64,000 nt of DNA. It comes from Neoechinorhynchus agilis. Its lineage: Eukaryota; Animalia; Acanthocephala. Under the pieces are notes generated by a model, which was given only the letters and a program-made list of their open reading frames with translations, was not told where the DNA came from and did no database searches. The stretch's first letter is position 1, and each line of letters opens with the position of its first letter. A program made the position numbers and the translations under genes. The stretch covers positions 14,362,784-14,426,783 of the forward strand of contig CM121341.1 of the NCBI GenBank assembly GCA_051530055.1, read 5' to 3'. Positions 1 through 9,870 of this stretch are shown here, one piece after another.

Positions 1-790
1 AACAGGTCGTGGTGTAAGCACTTCCATATACCGGAAACGTGGAATCTGTTGGCAAAGCACATCTTGGCTAACCAATTCCCCTCAAGCCTTTAAAATCGGG
101 GTAGCACGTTCTTTATTCCGGCGAGCCATCAAAATCTGCAACATTCGCAAGGACAGAGAACGTGAAATCGACAATATCAGGAAGATGCTGGAAAGAAGGG
201 ATTACCCATATTGGGCTATCCGACAGGCACTTAAGAAAGAGAGATATTCAAGACCCAATCGACCAACGGAAAGTCCAGCTACGACAATCATCAGGGCCGA
301 ATTCGTAGACGATTTTTGTTCTAATCTGATTCGCAGGACCCTAAGAAATTCAAAATGCCCTGTTGGACTTTATCACAAGAGATCTCCGACTATCGTGGGC
401 ATCTTCAAAAGAAAAACCGAACAAAAAACGGTTGCGAACGTAGTCTACCGCATCCCCCCGCAACGATTCCGAAATGTCCTACGTAGGTGAAACAATGCGG
501 TGTTTAACTACGCGGCTGCGGGAGCACAAATTAGCCTTACGATTTGGCGACACTACGTCGGCCAATTTTGAATCACTCTCACTTAACCACACACTCAATC
601 GAATTCGACAAGACCGACGTCCTCTGCAAAAAAGTAAATATATTGATCCTTCCTCCTCGACTACTGACGGTTCATTGTACAAAATTACCAATCTCATACA
701 AGGAAAGTTTCAATCATTTACCTGAGTAAAAAATCAGCAAAGACACTTGTATCAATTCCGACGGAAGGTCAGACCAAAATGAATGAGTTT
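1..790 (+). mobile_element. Penelope-like element (PLE) 3' remnant: RT thumb plus frameshifted GIY-YIG endonuclease, with a degenerate hammerhead-like motif at 758-780
   Basis: Frame reading TSIYRK...ARSLFRRAIKIC...EIDNIRKMLERRDYP matches the PLE RT C-terminus. It continues VVYRIP / SYVGETMRCLTTRLREHK (GIY-YIG) across a frameshift. Downstream CCGACGGAA-GGTC-A-GACC-AAAA resembles a decayed CTGAnGA...GAAA core. Confidence 0.85.
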
Positions 791-1530
791 AAATTGCTCC
801 GGTTTACTAAAACAATTCACAAACACAATGTTGCCTGGTTTTAGATATCCATGAACAATGTTCAAATCTTATAGTTTCTACCGCTATCAACATTTGGGGT
901 CACGAAGATAAAAAACGATCCATTTGCATTGGTCTAAATTTGTTCATAAACACATGAAGATGCATTGCATTGATGATCACAGTATTTGAAAATTTCGAGG
1001 GAAACTGCGATGAAGAAGCAAGGAAAAAAGGTTACAAGAAACTGTGAACACTGGGCCGTTAATGAATGCGACGTTCAAATCGGATTTATCGAGTTAGCAA
1101 ATCTACATCTCCTCGATCTTCTAACGGACTCCAGAGCTATGCGGCCCATTTCATTGGGAAACGATGGTATAAACGAATATACGATTAAAGAAAATCAATT
1201 AAGTCACTATCTAATGAAGAATGTGGTGAAATTCCAGCGCCTGACTACAAAATCATGGCACTTGCAACGTCGAAAGTTTTATGTGAGATTTTTCAAGAAT
1301 TTAATACAGTTGTATCGAGAATCCTAATCTGATTCGTATAAAGTGCAGCCTTGCAAGAAAGTCCCGCTAAACATCTAGATTATCACCATCCTTGGTTGAA
1401 TCTGACCTTTCGTGAAAAACGCGCCATAGAACGTAAAAAGCGCATTATGGAGGTCCGAAGACAGCAAATGCACAAGCATTCAATAATGCGATTAATACGG
1501 TGCACTGATGGAAAAAATTATGAATATATT

Positions 1531-1572
1531 AATCAGAATTTTCGACCAATGCGTTGGTCTTCTTCAGTCACA
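1531..1572 (-). ncRNA. Minimal hammerhead-ribozyme-like motif of the PLE 3' end
   Basis: Minus strand reads CTGAAGA-A-GACCAA-CGCA-TTGGTC-GAAA-ATTC, about 11 nt after the GIY-YIG stop codon. It has an intact core, a perfect 6-bp stem II and a palindromic AATT mini stem III. Stem I is imperfect. Confidence 0.65.
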
Positions 1573-2480
1573 TGCAATTAGTCTGGATTGAGTATCCACC
1601 CTTTCACCACAGCTTTAAAGGGTACACGTAAATTAAGTGTGTAGTCCGCTTTGTTATGCGTGAACGTGTTGCCGTGTTCAATCATGATGGCCTCCATTGT
1701 GATTCTGTCACGTTTGTTGTCGCATCTCGCCATTATTTCAGTGGCATCAAGATCAATTCGATATTTGTTTTCTTTAACGTGATGAACTAATGCTGAGTTG
1801 AGATCGGTCAACTTGCTGATGGCCCGTCTATGTTCGGTCAACCTTCTTCGGATGTTATTGGTTTGTCCAATAAATGATTGGTCACAATCGTTACAGGGTA
1901 TCCTGTACACACACCCGGAGACCTCGTCAGCCCTTCTGGGTCGGAACATGCCATCTAAGGTTCTCCTTTTTTTTGTTAAAAACCGTCACTTTTTTCTGTG
2001 AATCCTGCTGCTTTATGAGATTTTGCATATTCGTGTTCCACTGATCGTCTACATAAGGGATCTCAATGAATCATTTTTGGACTTCCTCGATATTCCGATT
2101 GTTCAATTTTATATATTGAGTATTTCTCATCGTTTTTGCAATCAGATCCCTCGGATAACCACCAATTTTCAGCAATCTCCAAATTGTGTCAAGTTCATTC
2201 TCAAGAACATCTTCATTCGAGCAATATCTGTATGCTCTCAAGAACATGGACCTCACTCTGGAGATTTTATATTTCGTCAGTTGTGCTGATATCCAAGGAC
2301 TCTTTTTTGCGAAAAGCATACTTTTTAAATTTAGAACACAGCAAGTGGCCATGGGTAAGGAGCGGTCCTTTTTCCTATAGTGACCATCCGAAGAGTAGAA
2401 CTATTCCCGTTTGAGCATAAGCGAATGGTACGAGCCTTCTTAATAGTGATATCAAAAGCCTGTCGTATTGGTAACTGTAG
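1531..2480 (-). mobile_element. 5'-truncated Penelope-like element (RT thumb plus GIY-YIG), frameshifted
   Basis: ORF 2071-2352 reads KISRVRSMFLRAYRYCSNE..LENELDTIWRLLKIGGYP. ORF 1578-1949 reads GCVYRIPCNDCDQSFIGQTNNIRRRLTEH...SALVHH...MEAIMI. Confidence 0.9.
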
Positions 2481-2489
2481 GATTTTAAA

Positions 2490-2700
2490 CGTGAAACTCG
2501 AATCCGTTGGAATGAAGGAATAAGCACATCATGACCTTGCATTCTTTTAACATAAAGGCACGCACCATTGCATTACTATGGAAGCTCAACATTATGAAGT
2601 AGCACAATGGGTGTCACAGTCCCACTTAAAATCGCAGTCGATGGAGCTAAGGAACTCGATTGGATAAATGGCTACACTCTCATTATGTACAACTGTATTA
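2490..2700 (-). pseudogene. Degenerate Helitron/PIF1-type helicase fragment
   Basis: Minus frames give YPIEFLSSI and, after a frameshift, PIVLLHNVELP**CNGACLYVKRM. These resemble the Helitron helicase motifs YPxEFLxS and PIxLLRNLxPxxLCNGTRLxV. Confidence 0.6.
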
Positions 2701-2729
2701 AAGGGCCAATTAACCAACCAAATTTAGCT

Positions 2730-3021
2730 CTCTATACCGGCGCTCCTTTTTTAATACCGCCCAATCTTCTCGAATACCGTGACAGGAAATGAACCGGAGG
2801 AAAGGCCAACCTCACAGGCTCTCCAAGAAACAGTAACCGCTGATATTCCCACCCGAACAAACTTCCGTCGAGCGGATCTTCCCACTCGATCAAAACACTA
2901 AAATACTCAATAATCAACATCCACATTCTTTGAACAACTCTGAACTGGAGTGCTTATGAGGACCCAAAGGTACATGGGTTCTATTCCTTGTATTTCAAAA
3001 AATAAACGTGCTATTATTATA
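2730..3021 (+). mobile_element. L2/CR1-like LINE 3' end (family copy 1) with stem-loop and (TTA)n tail
   Basis: Homologous to copies at about 10.8, 36.9, 38.0 and 43.5 kb. Ends GAGGACCC-aaaggtacat-GGGTTCT ... AATAAACGTGCTATTATTAT. Confidence 0.7.
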
Positions 3022-3503
3022 ATTGTGTTACATCTTATGGAATCATATCCAGGATGTTGCTGTTTATATCATTGATGGTATTATCTTGTGTAGCAAGGAA
3101 TGCACAACTAGCTGTGATCTGTATAATTCCGTGATATAGTAAAACTCTGAAATATTGGTCCAAAATGACACATCTCGTTTCAACTGCGTAAATTGCTAAA
3201 ATAAGGGCAATTGAAAAGATAATGTACAATTTAGAAATAAGTCGATAATCCACCAACTAATTTGAAGGGTTTGCGCGAACGCTTAGCAGTTGTATTTCCC
3301 ACAGTAAGCGGTTGAAGCGTTTAGGAAAGCATTAAATTTGTCAGCTATTATTGACTTGGGTATGACCGGACAAGTTTGCCTCAAGCTACCAGCTAAGAGC
3401 TTTGATAAATCGCAAAAATGGGATTGGAATGTCGAGTATGGACGAGCGGATGGATATTTTATATAATTAAGTGTAATTTTAAAAAATCGCTTCTCAAAAA
3501 GGA

Positions 3504-4930
3504 TTACTTTCTCACACCCAACTTCCACACGATTCGAGTTGTTGTTTGATCCAATAGGCCAGCAATTTCACTGAGCAGATCTTTGTTACGTACTGGCGAT
3601 CCAGATTTTGTCAACCATTTCCCGTTCTTATGCCACCCAATCAACCATTTGCTCAAACAATTGTAAACGTAGCCTTGAGAGACCCAAACTTCACATTCTC
3701 CCATACTCTCAATGGAATCGATTAAACGAATCAAATCAATAACCGCTCTAAATTCAGATCTACTTGCATTTGTCGAGTCCAGACGTTGTGTCTTTTGAAG
3801 GTTCGGATGATCACTCTGGATTTCGTATGATGTCTCCTTCCCTACTACATATACTTTTAGAACTCGATGTTTGTAAACGGCCTCTTTAGCCAATCGATCG
3901 GCTATTTCATTTCCATGAATTCCAAAATGTGCCTTCACTTGCGGGAAAGTGTATAAATGTCTCCCTTTTTTATCCACCTTCCCGCCTCACGTGAATCCAA
4001 TGGATCTTTAGTTGCTGTGACAAATTGTAGAGCTTATTAAGTTCTTCTTTGTTCTTCACACTATCACCGTCCGACTTTATCCAGCCGTTTTTTATCCATT
4101 TAGGAATCCATTCGGTCATACACTGAACAAGAAATAAGCTATCAGTATGAACATTTAAAATCGTAAAATTTTGTTCAATTGCTTGTCCCACAGCCCTAAT
4201 TGCGGCCAATATCTCAGCTTTGTTGTTCGTTACACCGTATGACGATAGAACCCGTTCCGTCACGTTCCATGGACTGCCTTCGGACCAATAAACACCAATA
4301 CCCGCTACTGCATCACCAGTTCCGTTCTGTAGACAACACCCGTCGATGTAGACATCGTTTTTATGGAGCATCTCAGTCGTACAATGCTTCTCAGCGCCTG
4401 CCTTGGCTAACCGGTCCGCCCATTCGTTACCCATGTCGAGTTTCTGATGAGCACGTACAAACTCCCATTTCAGATTAGGTATCTGGCTACACAAATAATC
4501 CAGTCTTACCAAATCATCCCGATTCTTTAAAAGGAAATAATTTGCACAAAGATTTTCTACCAATGCAAACGACCCTCAAATACACTTTCCTGTTTGCCGC
4601 CGATCCCACGTTTCCTCAACAACCATCCATTCTTTTTCCATCCACTAATCCATTTGGTCATGCAATCGATCATAAACTGACTATCAGTCCTAACTGTCAA
4701 ACTTTGCTTTCCTGCCTTCACGGCAATCTCTAATGCTCGAATAGCAGCGTTCAGTTCTGCTCTAATATTCGTTTGCTTTTCTTTTATACTCGATCCCAGT
4801 GGCTCTGATACGTTTGAGGGATGGTCCGGGCGACCCCAGTATACTCCAATGCCTGCTTTTGCTCCGCACCGCCCGTTTCCAAAGCAGCACCCGTCGGTGT
4901 AGACAATGTCTGGTAAACTTTCCACGGTGA
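3504..4930 (-). CDS. Multi-exon protein with three tandem RNase H1-like domains (two with complete DEDD sites, third degenerate). The 5' exon is not located, and a possible extra 3' exon ends at 3283.
   Basis: Domain 1: VYTDG, RAEL, TDSQ, GNEWADRLA. Domain 2: VYIDG, KAEI, TDSL, GNEIADRLA. Domain 3: VYVVG, RSEF, VSQG, WHKNGKWLTKSGSPVRNKDL. The ORFs are joined by intron-sized gaps at about 4530-4585 and 3939-3990. Confidence 0.88.
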
Positions 4931-5097
4931 CTGTAATAAAGTCAGAGAATCTATAAATCTTAGAGGATTTTAAAAAAGGTCAATAATATGTGGTGGTCTT
5001 AGTCCTAAAATTTATGTATCGTCAAAGGCAAACTATAAATTCATATTTTGCTTTTTGTTAAGTGCGAATTAAACACATTAACAACCTTGATAAAATC

Positions 5098-5180
5098 ACA
5101 AGTTTGTGCCGAAATATTGGGATCAATAAATTCTTTCAATTTTTCCGCCATATAAAAAACATGAATAGTTCAATCTTCAA
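5098..5180. mobile_element. MITE-like family B arm; other copies at about 12095-12180, 18035-18205, 31470-31683 and the split copy 43065-43091/43938-43994
   Basis: Recurrent motif gtgccgaaatattggat(c/t)taataaattcttt(c/t)aatttttxcgccata...atgaatagttcaatcttcaaa. Confidence 0.65.
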
Positions 5181-5225
5181 AAATCTAAATTCATATTTAT
5201 GCGTGGCTCAGCCGGTTGCCTTTTT

Positions 5226-5653
5226 ATCGATAAGTACAAGATGAGGATTTTTTACCACACACATATCTCCGTCCTTATTCTCAGATTGCTCACGAGGAGG
5301 CGGGACCCATCAGTCAGTTTCCTCCTCCCTTCAGCTTTATTTCGCCCCTTTCGTTGCGCGTCATCAGCTTTGGACATCTCCTAATCCCAGCTTGGGTGAA
5401 AGAGGTCAAATCCGTTACCGCCGATCACGCACAACCAAAGGGGACGAAATACCGCTAAAGGGAGGAAAAAACTCATTGATTACTCCCGCCTCCTCGTGAG
5501 CAATCTGAGAATCCGGACAGAGATGTACGAACTTAAATCGGCACGATTATGGGCATTGAGCTCAGACCAGCGCTTCCTGGACCTCGATCGGTAGACCGTG
5601 TGCCCATAATTCAGATGTGTATGGTAAAACATCCTCATCTTGTACTTATCGAT
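5226..5653. repeat. Nested foldback (inverted-repeat) element
   Basis: Outer arms 5226-5266/5613-5653. Perfect 29-bp arms 5277-5305/5484-5512 extend imperfectly to about 5368/5420. A small extra IR (attatgggca/tgcccataat) lies at about 5546-5610. Confidence 0.8.
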
Positions 5654-6096
5654 GCAAACTATAAATTTTATAACTCAAGAAACATAACAGCTATTGCAAA
5701 TCCGAAAACAACCTTGGGATCAGCGTACTTAATTTTAGCTACATATTTTATTAACGTGGTAAGTCGCGTTTCTTAACTTCGTTCGATTTCGCAAACATAA
5801 ATAATCCAATAAAAATAGAGTATTTCTGATCGATCATAAAACTACGTGAAAATCGGCGGCTACCAGGTCCAATGTGAATAAAAACGCAATTCTGACAAAC
5901 TAGTAAATCAACGTGATTACAAATGCATTACACTTTAGTTGATTTCGAAAAAAAGAAAATATTTTAACTCAGCGAGTTTATTTTCAATGTGGCTAAGAGG
6001 TTCTTTTAAAAAATATCCTGCAACGGAATGACTTGAACGCAATTTGCCTCAAAGCTCATGCATATTTTCAAATATCGACGTTTTTTAACAAGTCTG

Positions 6097-6240
6097 GGGA
6101 TTGTCTTTATCTAAGCAAGTCAAGCGGTTGAAACAAATGTCTATTTTGGATCGATATTTCAGAGTTTTACTCCTTCAGAGTTTTGAAACACACACGCAAT
6201 TGTGTTTCAACCGCGTATAGTGCTTAAATAAGGACAATCG
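6097..6240. mobile_element. MITE-like family C; other arms at about 3175-3225, 42796-42870 and 44246-44290
   Basis: Inverted arms gattgtctttatctaagca...gcggttgaaaca / tgtttcaaccgc...tgcttaaataaggacaatc, dispersed in four places. Confidence 0.6.
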
Positions 6241-6397
6241 AAAAAGTAACATGCGGTTGGGAAGTCAATCGATAAACCACCAACTAACCTACGCAGCCTG
6301 GCGGAAATACAAGCCAAGGCTTAATATTACAAGTGCTTAAAAGACTTACATTCGAGTTTGGAAGATCGAAACACCTTAAAGGACATTATGCGATTTA

Positions 6398-7051
6398 TCA
6401 GAGCAAAAGCATCAAATAAAGTGATTTTAAAAGGTTCTTGTTGAAAAGATCCATATAAGATAGTTGCCTAATGCGAGTAGGTATCGGATCAGAATCTGAG
6501 AACACGTATTCGAATAGTTTTTTAACAAAATTTCGGAATATACTCTCGTCTGCTTTTTCGAACACCTCAAAACATTTTCCATCGTCCATCACCGCTCGTA
6601 TTGAATCTACAAGTCCTCTACAACTTGTCCATTTAAGATATCCAAGACTTTGTGCTTTATCAGCAAGTTCGCATTGATGATTGTTCATGAGATCTTCATT
6701 GACAACAACAATAACTCGTTTGCACTTTGATTCAAGCGCCTCAATAACGGATCCTGCACCAGCGTGGCTTATTATGAGATCAGCTCCGTCCAGATATTCC
6801 TTTATGCTACTGTTCTGATAGCATTTCGAAAACCGAGCCACTCAGAATCGCATGTCGCAGTAGTCAAACGAAATACATTCTTCAAATCCACATGGTTCTT
6901 TGAATTCGTGAACGTTTCCATATTGTATGATTAACCTTGAAAATCCGAGGTCGTTTATTAAGAGCTTTGTGAAGCTGGAGTCAGAAGATATGAGATTAGT
7001 CAGTTTTGGAAAATTGGTTGTACCGACGGTTACGAATACAGTTCGACCCAT
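6398..7051 (-). CDS. ALG13: UDP-GlcNAc transferase catalytic subunit ALG13 (short form), with a probable 45-nt intron at 6815-6859
   Basis: Motifs VFVTVGTTNF, LIIQYG, ADLIISHAGAGSVIEAL, VIVVVNEDLMNNHQCELA. An in-frame TGA at 6842-6844 lies inside the putative intron. Confidence 0.92.
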
Positions 7052-7497
7052 GTGTAAAATCTGAAAATGATGAAAAATCAATAACAGCGGTTTTGATCAT
7101 TGTACCTACTGAATGATTTCTAGGTGGCTTAAAAAATTACCAGTCACTAAGCTACGATGCTTATGTGGCTTAAAAAAATATATTTCACGTTCTAAAAGTA
7201 GCATTTAAAAAAATCAGAGTTAACGTGACATTTTTTGGCATGCCCATTAATCTGTTGCCAATTCAGTTAGCACAAAAATTTTAAATCAATTATGTTTAAA
7301 ATGCAATCGCTAGCTCCGAAAACTTCCTGGTATTCACTTCTTCATTTTTAATGCTCCATTTTAAAATAAGAAGGCTACTTTAAACTTCCATTGCAGCATT
7401 AAGATACTCAACAAAAGAGAGAAATAGACTAAATGGGCATTAAAACACTCTTCTGCTTTTTTTTAATCCGGGGAACTTTATTTTAAGCCATAAGATC

Positions 7498-7600
7498 ATT
7501 CACACCACCGCTCTGGATCACTCAGCTGCCGTGCTGGTGTAACGGTCGAAAGGACGGATGCAGCGTTCCCTCGTTGCACAGCCATGACTTGTTTCAGTTA
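7498..7600 (-). mobile_element. CRE-clade non-LTR retrotransposon extreme 3' end
   Basis: Minus frame reads MAVQRGNAASVLSTVTPARQLSDPERWCE*, containing the C-terminal QRGNA motif. Confidence 0.7.
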
Positions 7601-7872
7601 TTATCGTTAGTATTATCGACTGAAATCTAAACTACCTCTTTCACTAATTTCAAAATTTGAACAATAAAGGGAACCTGACCTGACCTAGTTCGGACTAATG
7701 ACACTAATTCTCTAGATACAGGTCGTGACATTTATCATTACCACCATAAAAGGTCAAAGGCTTCTTCTGTAAGGGTAAAGTGAATCAGTGTGACAATTAG
7801 ACGATAAAAGAACATATAGACAACGAACATCTTTCAGCGACCTTCCAAACTCCAAGCTCAATCCATTCTAAG

Positions 7873-8196
7873 ATGGGAAACGCTAATAGCAGAGATATGC
7901 ACGAGATCTATGTTGAAGAACCGATGAAACCTGTGTCAAAGAAAATCAAAGGATCTAGGAAAAAGGATTTTGCCACATTCAATCCACCATATACGAGTGA
8001 ACTACAACAAATGAACTATCCTGTCCCAGCCTTTTATATACCGCCGCAACAATATATGATGCCAACTGCGCAACCTGCGATGATGGGTCCGTACTTGGGA
8101 CCAATGTACCCACAACCCATGATGTCGAATCCCATTTCACCACATGACTGTCTAGTCGGACGCTGGCATCAAGTCCCTGGAGTTTTCTACGCATAA
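7873..8196 (+). CDS. Small Pro/Met/Gln/Tyr-rich protein with a possible N-myristoylation start; function unknown
   Basis: 107-aa ORF starting MGNANS (MGxxxS). The ATG is directly preceded by ttctaag. Confidence 0.55.
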   Translation: MGNANSRDMHEIYVEEPMKPVSKKIKGSRKKDFATFNPPYTSELQQMNYPVPAFYIPPQQYMMPTAQPAMMGPYLGPMYPQPMMSNPISPHDCLVGRWHQVPGVFYA

Positions 8197-8213
8197 TAAA
8201 GTTTGGAAATGAA

Positions 8214-9870
8214 TCAATTTTTAGATATCTCCTTGAATGGGTCATATTGTTCACAAGAATCTTTAGACGTTACGCCGGTTAAAGCGAAACCAACCGCCTT
8301 CGATCCTTTCGCGCTGAAAAACCTTTTCCGTCTCCTATAATAGTGACTGCTATGATCGTCCTTCCAACCTTGTCTTCCTGAAGATTTTCTTCTAAACAAT
8401 CGACATGGATGCTGGTTCTTTTTATCTGCGCACATTATCCTAAGGTCTGCATTTTTTGAAACGTGAGGATCCTCAAAATACTATTCAAACCTCTTAGCTG
8501 TTGACTAATGTCGGCGAGTTTCTGATCCACCCTATCATCACGTTGAATACTATAAGGTGAGTTTGAGCGCTGATAATTATCCTGATTTTCTAATTTGCAC
8601 GACAAAGGTTTGAAAATCGGGTCTGAAGGGGAATCGAATCTTTAACTGAATTGAAATTAGACAAAATATTCTTAAGATTTGACCAAAAGGAAACTCTCGT
8701 AGCCACTAACCCAGTAAACACCTTGCAAGGTTGTCTTAAATCCAAAACTTCCTTTCTGGTATGTAAAGGCAAACATAGAGCAAGAATATATAATTTTGTT
8801 CGGCTATAAGACAAAGCCCGTTGAATTCGACGTCTTATGATACAACGATTACACTTTAATTGATACGCTTTAGACGATAACATTTTGTTTACCGCCTAGG
8901 CCCGGCACAGTTTATTAAATCTTATCGGCTACTAATTGAAGGATATCTCGCTAGTTCACTAATACTAGGAATTTTAGGATACAATTTGGAGGAGAACGAC
9001 GACGTTCATGGTCTAGTTGAAGGCTAGTTAAAAGGAAAATTATTTCATAAGCAGACCAGCCGATTTGAACAATTTAGAAAATCTCGGTGTTAAGAAATTC
9101 ACGCTAAAATCTAACACGTCAATTCTTTTCAAATGATAGGAAAGCTCACTAACGTGCAACTCAGATCTTAAGCTCCGGATATCTGTACGACAAAATTGAG
9201 CTCCCGTATGAACGGTAGCTTTCTTAAAGTTCTAGAGTTTAATATTTTTATAAGAAAATCAAATGCTACCATGAGTACGTCTGGAGGTACGTGATACATT
9301 ATCGCCAGTCGCATCATAGTGTGATAAAGCAAATCCTTTACTGTCTTTGGTTTCTACATTCATAATTATAAGACAATAGAAAAAAATTAAATTAAGAAGC
9401 TGACGTTTCTAATATCTTCTCTAGCTACTAGTCGTTTCAAGACATCGGCATCATTTAACTGTTATTGGTTTGCATTGATAACGCCGAAAATAGTTAACTC
9501 ACTGGAATTCGAACACGGCTTGTCTTTAAAATATGACCAATAGCTGCAAAGAAACCACGTAAATCTTTGCTCTGAGAAGATTCCATTTTTTGAAGCATTT
9601 CTTGTGTAATTCGACGATTTAAGTCGCCACTACGGAACTTATAAAAGAGAACATCGATAAACGGAATACCTGGCTCTATGAGCTACTCGGCTCATTTCTT
9701 CACTCTTAAACCTGGGCCAGTCAGACTTCGATAAAGAAATTAAAATTTACTTGCCTGATAAAAAGCGCAACGCTTCTTCCAACAGTTTGGGTTTTTGCAT
9801 GAACATCCTGATCGAACTTTTGTTTACAGAATCGTCATGGACGGCGGTAAACACACGAACACTTACAACA
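8214..9870 (-). CDS. Probable multi-exon gene of unknown function (exon structure unresolved)
   Basis: Several short minus-strand open stretches (8214-8435, 8590-8883, about 9480-9620 and 9750-9870) are bounded by GT/AG-like sites. No recognisable motif. Confidence 0.3.

Follow-up and report, generated by a model that had tools for sequence, protein, structure and literature searches.

A probable RNase H1 with three tandem domains, the last one degenerate, and no hybrid-binding domain in the acanthocephalan Neoechinorhynchus agilis

Introduction

In animals RNase H1 is required for the replication of mitochondrial DNA, and it also removes R-loops; its hybrid-binding domain (HBD) is held to give the enzyme affinity and processivity. 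The human enzyme (RNASEH1, PDB 2QK9/2QKK) combines a single catalytic domain of the Pfam family RNase_H (PF00075) with an N-terminal HBD (PF01693) and a connection domain. Here we describe a locus of the acanthocephalan Neoechinorhynchus agilis, on the minus strand at positions 3504–4930 of a window of 64,000 nucleotides (contig CM121341.1), that carries three domains of the same catalytic type in tandem (D1, D2, and D3), the third one dead and truncated, and neither an HBD nor a connection domain. The basic protrusion of the catalytic domain is common to the human and the acanthocephalan proteins.

In the dual RNase H of retroviruses a dead fold helps to hold the nucleic acid. The nearest described analogue of the N. 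agilis array is this dual RNase H, which occurs in retroviruses and also in some Ty3/Gypsy elements, and in which a dead tether or connection fold lies beside an active RNase H in one polypeptide (PMC4408406, PMC9040795). It forms part of a reverse transcriptase (RT) polyprotein, has the dead domain on the N-terminal side and belongs to another RNase H lineage, whereas the N. agilis protein has no RT, a C-terminal dead domain and two copies of the active type. A literature search found neither a paper on cellular RNase H1 with catalytic domains in tandem nor a study of the arrays of this kind that are present in databases (see below). The active-active-dead array of N. agilis is an uncharacterised variant of a known enzyme, within a recurring and unstudied class of tandem arrays, and its architecture is neither unique nor categorically new.

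Results and Discussion

One gene with three RNase H1 domains

Three minus-strand open pieces of the locus, scanned singly, all gave Pfam RNase_H matches above the curated cut-off of 25.8 bits (Table 1), and the middle one was closest to the human RNase H1 catalytic domain 2qk9 (E 5.8e-29), with Escherichia coli RNase HI next and retroviral RNase H far behind. The first-pass annotation of this DNA was thus right in recognising three RNase H domains on one strand. The coding sequence is divided into three exons by two GT-AG introns of 59 and 40 nt. For their placement we built our own RNase H1 profile from nine single-domain relatives, on which the exon pieces were positioned by hmmalign; spliced D2 and D3 were taken from the database protein KAL7677156.1 (see below). 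Exon A matched this profile with 139 bits over positions 10–104, while the two Pfam RNase_H stretches of exon B cover profile positions 111–154 and then 10–133. Reading through intron 1 leads to a stop codon.

Both introns interrupt domains, one D1 and the other D2, and the two domain junctions, D1/D2 (...GNEWADRLAKAGAEKH-CTTEMLHKND-VYIDGCC...) and D2/D3 (...GNEIADRLAKEAVYKH-RVLK-VYVVG..., with a linker of about five residues), run through unbroken exon sequence. The intron-sized gaps that had been described as the only separation between the domains are therefore introns inside D1 and D2. Since the junctions are exonic, separate single-domain genes are excluded and a single transcription unit covers all three domains, as had been proposed; a database protein of the same species, KAL7677156.1 (P0001), joins the three domains with the identical two introns. 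Some database multi-domain proteins do resemble merged duplicates, such as P0004 with its two identical units, which could suggest that the annotation has merged separate genes or that collapsed or duplicated copies were produced by the assembly. This is very improbable for N. agilis, where D1/D2 and D2/D3 are each continuous inside one exon, across linkers of 10 and about 5 residues, and where the three domains are just 26–48% identical to one another and so are not assembly duplicates. It is highly probable that we are dealing with one gene, for an RNase H1 that lacks the HBD and has three domains in tandem. It would be expressed as one mRNA with at least three coding exons, giving a protein of about 430–450 residues.

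The small size of intron 2 is normal for this genome, because a 40-nt GT-AG intron (GTAAAC...CTTTAG) also restores the conserved frame in the N. agilis RNase H2A gene (C2:2421400-2422400, minus strand). That gene has a second short interruption of 46 nt after 'DSK', for which no in-frame solution with canonical sites was obtained; being out of frame, it was dropped as a second example of intron size.

Table 1. Features of the N. agilis RNase H1 locus and its upstream region, in window coordinates
Feature	Position	Strand	Description
Open piece	4560-4925	-	122 aa; Pfam RNase_H 75.6 bits, E 5.8e-21
Open piece	3973-4563	-	197 aa; Pfam RNase_H 103.2 bits, E 1.7e-29
Open piece	3507-3977	-	157 aa; Pfam RNase_H 47.8 bits, E 2.1e-12
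Exon A	4584-4930	-	N-terminal two thirds of D1 (beta1 to basic protrusion), ending ...GKQES
Intron 1	4525-4583	-	59 nt, GTATTT...TTTTAAAG, phase 0; within D1, in the loop directly before the Asn equivalent to human N240
Exon B	3978-4524	-	D1 C-terminal part, linker and D2 beta1 to beta5
D1 C-terminal part	4384-4524	-	alphaD, beta5, His, GNEWAD, alphaE
D1-D2 linker	4354-4383	-	CTTEMLHKND, 10 residues; exon B
D2 beta1 to beta5	3978-4353	-	Exon B
Intron 2	3938-3977	-	40 nt, GTGGAT...CGCAAG, phase 1; within D2, between beta5 and the catalytic His
Exon C	3504-3937	-	D2 end, D3 and stop TAA (3504-3506)
D2 end	3867-3937	-	KAHFGIHGNEIADRLAKEAVYKH; exon C
Degenerate D3	3507-3866	-	Exon C; Pfam RNase_H E 2.1e-12
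Candidate start 1 (predicted only)	ATG 5310, donor 5293, acceptor 4951	-	In frame; donor GTGAGC, equal to the annotated donor; from a scan of ATG and GT combinations
Candidate first exon 2 (predicted only)	5100-5151, donor 5099, acceptor 4931	-	In frame; ATG 5151 (MAEKLKEFIDPNISAQT), phase-1 donor CTT|GTGATT
MITE-like inverted-repeat element	5200-5660	.	Just upstream of the gene; contains annotated exon 1 and ATG 5310

Complete active sites in the first two domains

The four carboxylates of the active site (human D145, E186, D210, and D274) and the His of the flexible loop are complete in D1 and D2 and incomplete in D3. In the hmmalign placement, D1 shows Asp (YTDG), Glu (RAE), Asp (RTDSQ), His (AHQ), and Asp (GNEWAD), and D2 the same series in YIDG, KAE, HTDSL, AHF, and GNEIAD, which confirms the four acidic residues already read in both domains by the first-pass annotation and adds the His to them. 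The basic protrusion (W...W.KNGW motif) and the phosphate-pocket Asn were found in all three domains. Compared with metazoan RNase H1 catalytic domains, identity is about 45–53% for D2 and reaches 58% for D1. With their active sites complete, D1 and D2 are quite probably both active hybrid nucleases, and each would cut the RNA in RNA:DNA hybrids through the usual two-metal mechanism.

A degenerate third domain with an open frame

The third domain has been described as keeping only the Glu and the basic protrusion, and this holds, but it is more degenerate than was stated. Its first three catalytic columns are occupied by Val (VYVVG), Glu (RSEF), and Ser (VSQG), the His and the last Asp are gone (signature -/E/S/-/-), and about 13 residues of the beta2-beta3 hairpin are missing (there is no GIGVYW). 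A stop codon after beta5 (RIVWKLGVRK) cuts D3 short of the His, the fourth carboxylate and helix alphaE. With a relaxed profile, 1–3530 and 4926–9000 were searched in all frames of the minus strand, and no further RNase H fragment, including any alphaE-like exon, was found. A similarity in frame +1 ('SHF...') was considered as the missing part of D3 and dropped, as it has no acceptor AG before it. What D3 retains is the segment KWLIGWHKNGKW...PVRNKDL, with KWLIGWHKNGKWLTKSGSPVRNKDLL as its basic protrusion. With human numbering transferred from the 2qk9 alignment, the equivalents of T181, N182, E186, W221, W225, and N240 are retained, F213 is replaced by Tyr, and those of D145, C148, N151, R179, D210, S233, H264, and D274 are lost. 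Two Trp residues of exon C, W98 and W102, are invariant in an alignment of 60 sequences, and the domain is basic (isoelectric point 9.4).

When exon C was modelled by AlphaFold2 with the 60-sequence alignment, which itself draws the model toward the RNase H fold, the mean predicted local distance difference test score (pLDDT) was 86.5 and the predicted template modelling (TM) score 0.77. The model has the order beta1-beta2-beta3-alphaA-beta4-alphaB/C-alphaD-beta5, alphaE not being encoded. Foldseek matched this alignment-guided model to E. coli RNase HI (E 9e-9) and to human RNase H1 (TM score 0.65–0.69, root-mean-square deviation 2.2–2.8 Å). In D3, 116 codons run without a stop, against 8 and 10 stops in the other two frames, and only 0.04% of shuffled sequences and none of 2164 flanking-DNA windows of equal length were equally open. 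At the same time D3 is only 25–31% identical to any other RNase H domain over the profile columns. A domain so old and diverged, and yet open and in register, speaks for selection on a property apart from catalysis, and from the maintained frame and the predicted fold we consider it fairly likely that D3 has been retained by selection, as a pseudo-nuclease.

One alternative is that D3 is a functionless, tolerated C-terminal tail, a decayed duplicate, in which case the HBD-less enzyme would work with two heads, or in effect with one, and its third domain would add nothing to avidity. Three of the four carboxylates, the His, alphaE and the hairpin residues have indeed been lost, the domain sits on a very long branch, and no D3-like homologue was found. 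The equivalents of N151 and R179, relevant for binding, are gone as well; in the human catalytic domain the mutations that lower heteroduplex binding most are those of these two residues (PMC6846478). However, unselected sequence so diverged should carry stops or frameshifts, and so few shuffles are as open as D3; the alignment-guided model gives the fold with confidence, the Trp-rich basic protrusion has been kept selectively, and dead domains recur beside active ones in other HBD-less arrays (see below). We thus regard the decayed tail as rather unlikely.

As to what a selected D3 would do, a tentative and somewhat doubtful answer, of the kind already suggested in the first-pass annotation, is nucleic-acid binding in place of the HBD, with the DNA strand or the hybrid contacted through the basic protrusion, whose Trp is stacked on a deoxyribose in human RNase H1 (PMC8960830). 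The retained protrusion, the isoelectric point and the equivalents of W221, W225, N240, T181, and N182 are consistent with such a role, and the lost equivalents of N151 and R179 speak against it. D3 would then anchor the enzyme, and the array would gain affinity or processivity on R-loops and primers, in both nucleus and mitochondria. The remaining probability goes to D3 as a structural or regulatory partner of D2, or as the tolerated tail just discussed.

Absence of the hybrid-binding domain and genomic context

In the whole N. agilis assembly PF00075 was matched at this locus only. As no second gene of this type was found, the locus presumably serves as the functional orthologue of eukaryotic RNase H1. 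An RNase H2A is present on another contig. The HBD profile PF01693 (Cauli_VI) had zero matches in the whole genome, and when an HBD-bearing relative (P0007) was used as query, only catalytic domains were matched in it at E<=1. The Pfam scan of KAL7677156.1 gave no HBD either. An upstream HBD exon was sought by reading 4926–6400 in three frames, together with the genome-wide profile and protein searches, and nothing was found. The first-pass annotation had seen no HBD at the locus, and this can now be extended to the entire genome. The locus is a host RNase H1 whose HBD appears to have been lost.

Directly upstream, an open reading frame (ORF) for an ALG13-like glycosyltransferase was found at 6398–6841 on the same strand (Glyco_tran_28_C, E 3.5e-14), and its position leaves about 1.45 kb as room for a missing 5' exon of the RNase H1 gene. 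A GIY-YIG ORF (1578–1949, minus strand; Pfam E 8.6e-6) lies downstream, about 1.6 kb past the stop of the RNase H1 gene, and probably represents the 3' end of a Penelope-like retroelement that has lost its 5' part.

This fragment, on the same strand and in a repeat-rich region, could raise the suspicion that the RNase H domains themselves come from a retroelement, as RT-linked RNase H. Such an origin is extremely improbable. The best matches are cellular RNase H1 proteins with 52–63% identity, the domains have the basic protrusion that is typical of cellular enzymes, and neither RT or integrase in the flanking ORFs scanned with Pfam nor any more RNase H pieces nearby were found; to our knowledge, Penelope elements carry no RNase H. 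The assignment to a host gene made in the first-pass annotation is borne out by these cellular matches, by the grouping of D1 (see below) and by the uniqueness of the PF00075 locus. For a link of the array to retroelement intermediates, also suggested there, we found no evidence.

Tandem RNase H1 arrays in other organisms

In a HMMER scan over 1.84 billion cluster representatives we read the domain architecture of the 150 nearest, and 14 of them have two or three RNase H1 domains. All domains look active in five of these arrays, from a spider (P0003), a ctenophore (P0004), and fungi or fungus-like organisms (P0006, P0009, and P0016). The other nine carry at least one degenerate domain: P0002, P0005, the bacterial-type P0021, the chytrid P0037, the ostracod P0039 (Notodromas), P0105, and the nematode P0074, P0008, and P0148. 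The first-pass annotation had set both an upstream HBD exon and a wide occurrence of the architecture against its own reading; no such exon was found, and tandem arrays are no rarity in databases and often include dead domains.

The arrays with dead domains resemble that of N. agilis in having two or three RNase H1 domains and no HBD, and differ from it in lineage and in the order of active and dead copies. P0002 (from ENA) is active-dead-dead and P0005 (from Logan) dead-active-dead, with three domains each. P0002, the second-best match to the window protein, comes from a metagenome contig of 1810 nt that encodes 538 aa without introns, and its catalytic signatures are DEDHD, VESHR, and HEDHE. 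The nematode proteins, from Gnathostoma spinigerum (P0074) and Ditylenchus destructor (P0008 and P0148), have two to three RNase H1-like domains, all with lost catalytic residues, and no HBD. In a tree, the domains of the same protein cluster together in most arrays, which points to independent intragenic duplications. Divergence between the domains is much greater in N. agilis than within the other arrays.

An HBD was detected by Pfam scan in four of the five all-active arrays and in none of the nine with a degenerate domain, or none of ten if N. agilis is included; this is what would be predicted if dead domains replaced the HBD, but the association was noticed post hoc, in a small sample and in automatic gene models. 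That dead RNase H1 domains have become surrogate hybrid- or DNA-binding modules by convergence in several HBD-less lineages, N. agilis being one case, is an unlikely generalisation at present.

Origin of the array

The closest named relative is from another acanthocephalan, Pomphorhynchus laevis (GJ496_003080, P0156), a 151-aa RNase H1 that starts MPSARLLNVVYTDG and is likewise HBD-less as annotated. Unlike the N. agilis protein it has, as annotated, a single domain, its stop lying two residues past the 'GA' of alphaE. Over the profile columns this protein is 63% identical to D1 and 52% to D2, and D1 and D2 are 48% identical to each other. In a word-based protein search KAL7677156.1 had four matches and no orthologue, while exon A retrieved the P. 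laevis protein. In the trees D1 falls together with P0156 and an RNase H1 from a bryozoan (P0030), with a support of 90 in the Shimodaira–Hasegawa-like approximate likelihood ratio test and, in another tree, an ultrafast bootstrap of 94, which fits vertical descent. D1 is the orthologue of P0156.

The long branch of D3 recurs in the trees. With a C20 mixture model, a tree constrained to unite D1, D2, D3, and P0156 was 18 log-likelihood units better than a quick free tree (approximately unbiased test, p-AU 0.79). In a 22-row alignment under LG+G4 the same constraint was 10.8 units worse and not rejected (p-AU 0.32), and neither was a group of D1, D2, and D3 without P0156 (p-AU 0.12). The economical reading of these sequence comparisons would be a duplication within the gene, followed by fast evolution of D2 and D3.

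The 5' end of the gene and the GenBank model

The top match in the HMMER scan was the GenBank entry KAL7677156.1 itself, 453 aa long ('hypothetical protein ACOME3_003401 [Neoechinorhynchus agilis]'). The N. agilis assembly has 46.2 Mb in 102 contigs and was annotated by BRAKER with RNA-seq (PMC12690905); RNase H is unmentioned in the supplement of the genome paper. By exon mapping, the first exon of this model lies at 5294–5377 (MSKADD...) and is spliced to 4930, after which 4930–4811 (40 residues) is read out of the RNase H frame, giving the non-homologous SPWKVYQTLSTPTGAALETGG..., and the RNase H frame is regained through an extra 51-nt 'intron' (4761–4811). The RNase H frame is open across all of D1, from about 4979, so that it is only by mis-framing that the annotated model loses the first catalytic Asp. 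KAL7677156.1 is mis-modelled at its 5' end.

There are two candidate 3' splice sites ahead of exon A, at 4931 (ttattacag|) and 4951 (tttatag|), and each can be combined with a predicted start in frame (Table 1). The annotated first exon and one of these starts fall inside an element that resembles a miniature inverted-repeat transposable element (MITE), with nested inverted repeats (5265–5351/5438–5524, 83%; 5221–5264/5615–5658, 91%) and at least 108 matches in the genome, across the three large contigs.

These features of the 5' end could point to a pseudogene, or to translation that differs from the model, with the array as a relic in a genome missing many core genes. No in-frame ATG is present from about 4979 to D1, the annotated exon 1 belongs to a repeat of at least 108 copies, and 44.7% of the metazoan BUSCOs are missing in N. 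agilis (PMC12690905). Against this, about 430 codons are intact over three exons with canonical splice sites, D1 and D2 have kept all ten of their catalytic residues, no other type-1 RNase H was found in the genome, two simple in-frame solutions exist for the 5' exon, and the BRAKER models were built with RNA-seq evidence (PMC12690905). We consider a pseudogene distinctly improbable.

Proposed explanation

The best explanation of the whole, and on balance a probable one, is that N. agilis has a sole cellular, HBD-less RNase H1 in which the catalytic domain has been multiplied within the gene and D3 is a pseudo-nuclease under selection. Several points weigh against it, besides the post hoc nature of the HBD association. 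An HBD of 44 aa split into very short exons could escape the searches that we have used. D3 has lost the N151 and R179 equivalents, together with alphaE and part of the beta-hairpin, and a word-based protein search with exon C gave zero matches to a D3-like relative in other species. The placement of D2 and D3 in the trees is unstable, and neither the 176-row nor the 53-row tree settles their origin. At the 5' end, reading of the frame revealed no ATG between about 4979 and D1, and the annotated start is inside a repeat, which puts the N-terminus of D1 out of frame. Finally, no RNA-derived peptides for the array were found in the protein searches.

Implications

The importance of the finding is moderate, and the understanding of the RNase H mechanism is unchanged by it. 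On the practical side, the GenBank gene model is wrong at its 5' end, and the divergence of the enzyme from the RNase H1 of the host could be of interest in searches for parasite-specific targets. An animal whose only RNase H1 has no HBD, and has instead two intact catalytic domains and a dead one, is a natural experiment in other routes to substrate affinity, and the comparable arrays of unrelated organisms suggest a recurrent solution. If D3 is truly a surrogate for the HBD, the acanthocephalan enzyme would be a two-headed, self-anchoring RNase H1 in charge of all the nuclear and mitochondrial work of RNase H1.

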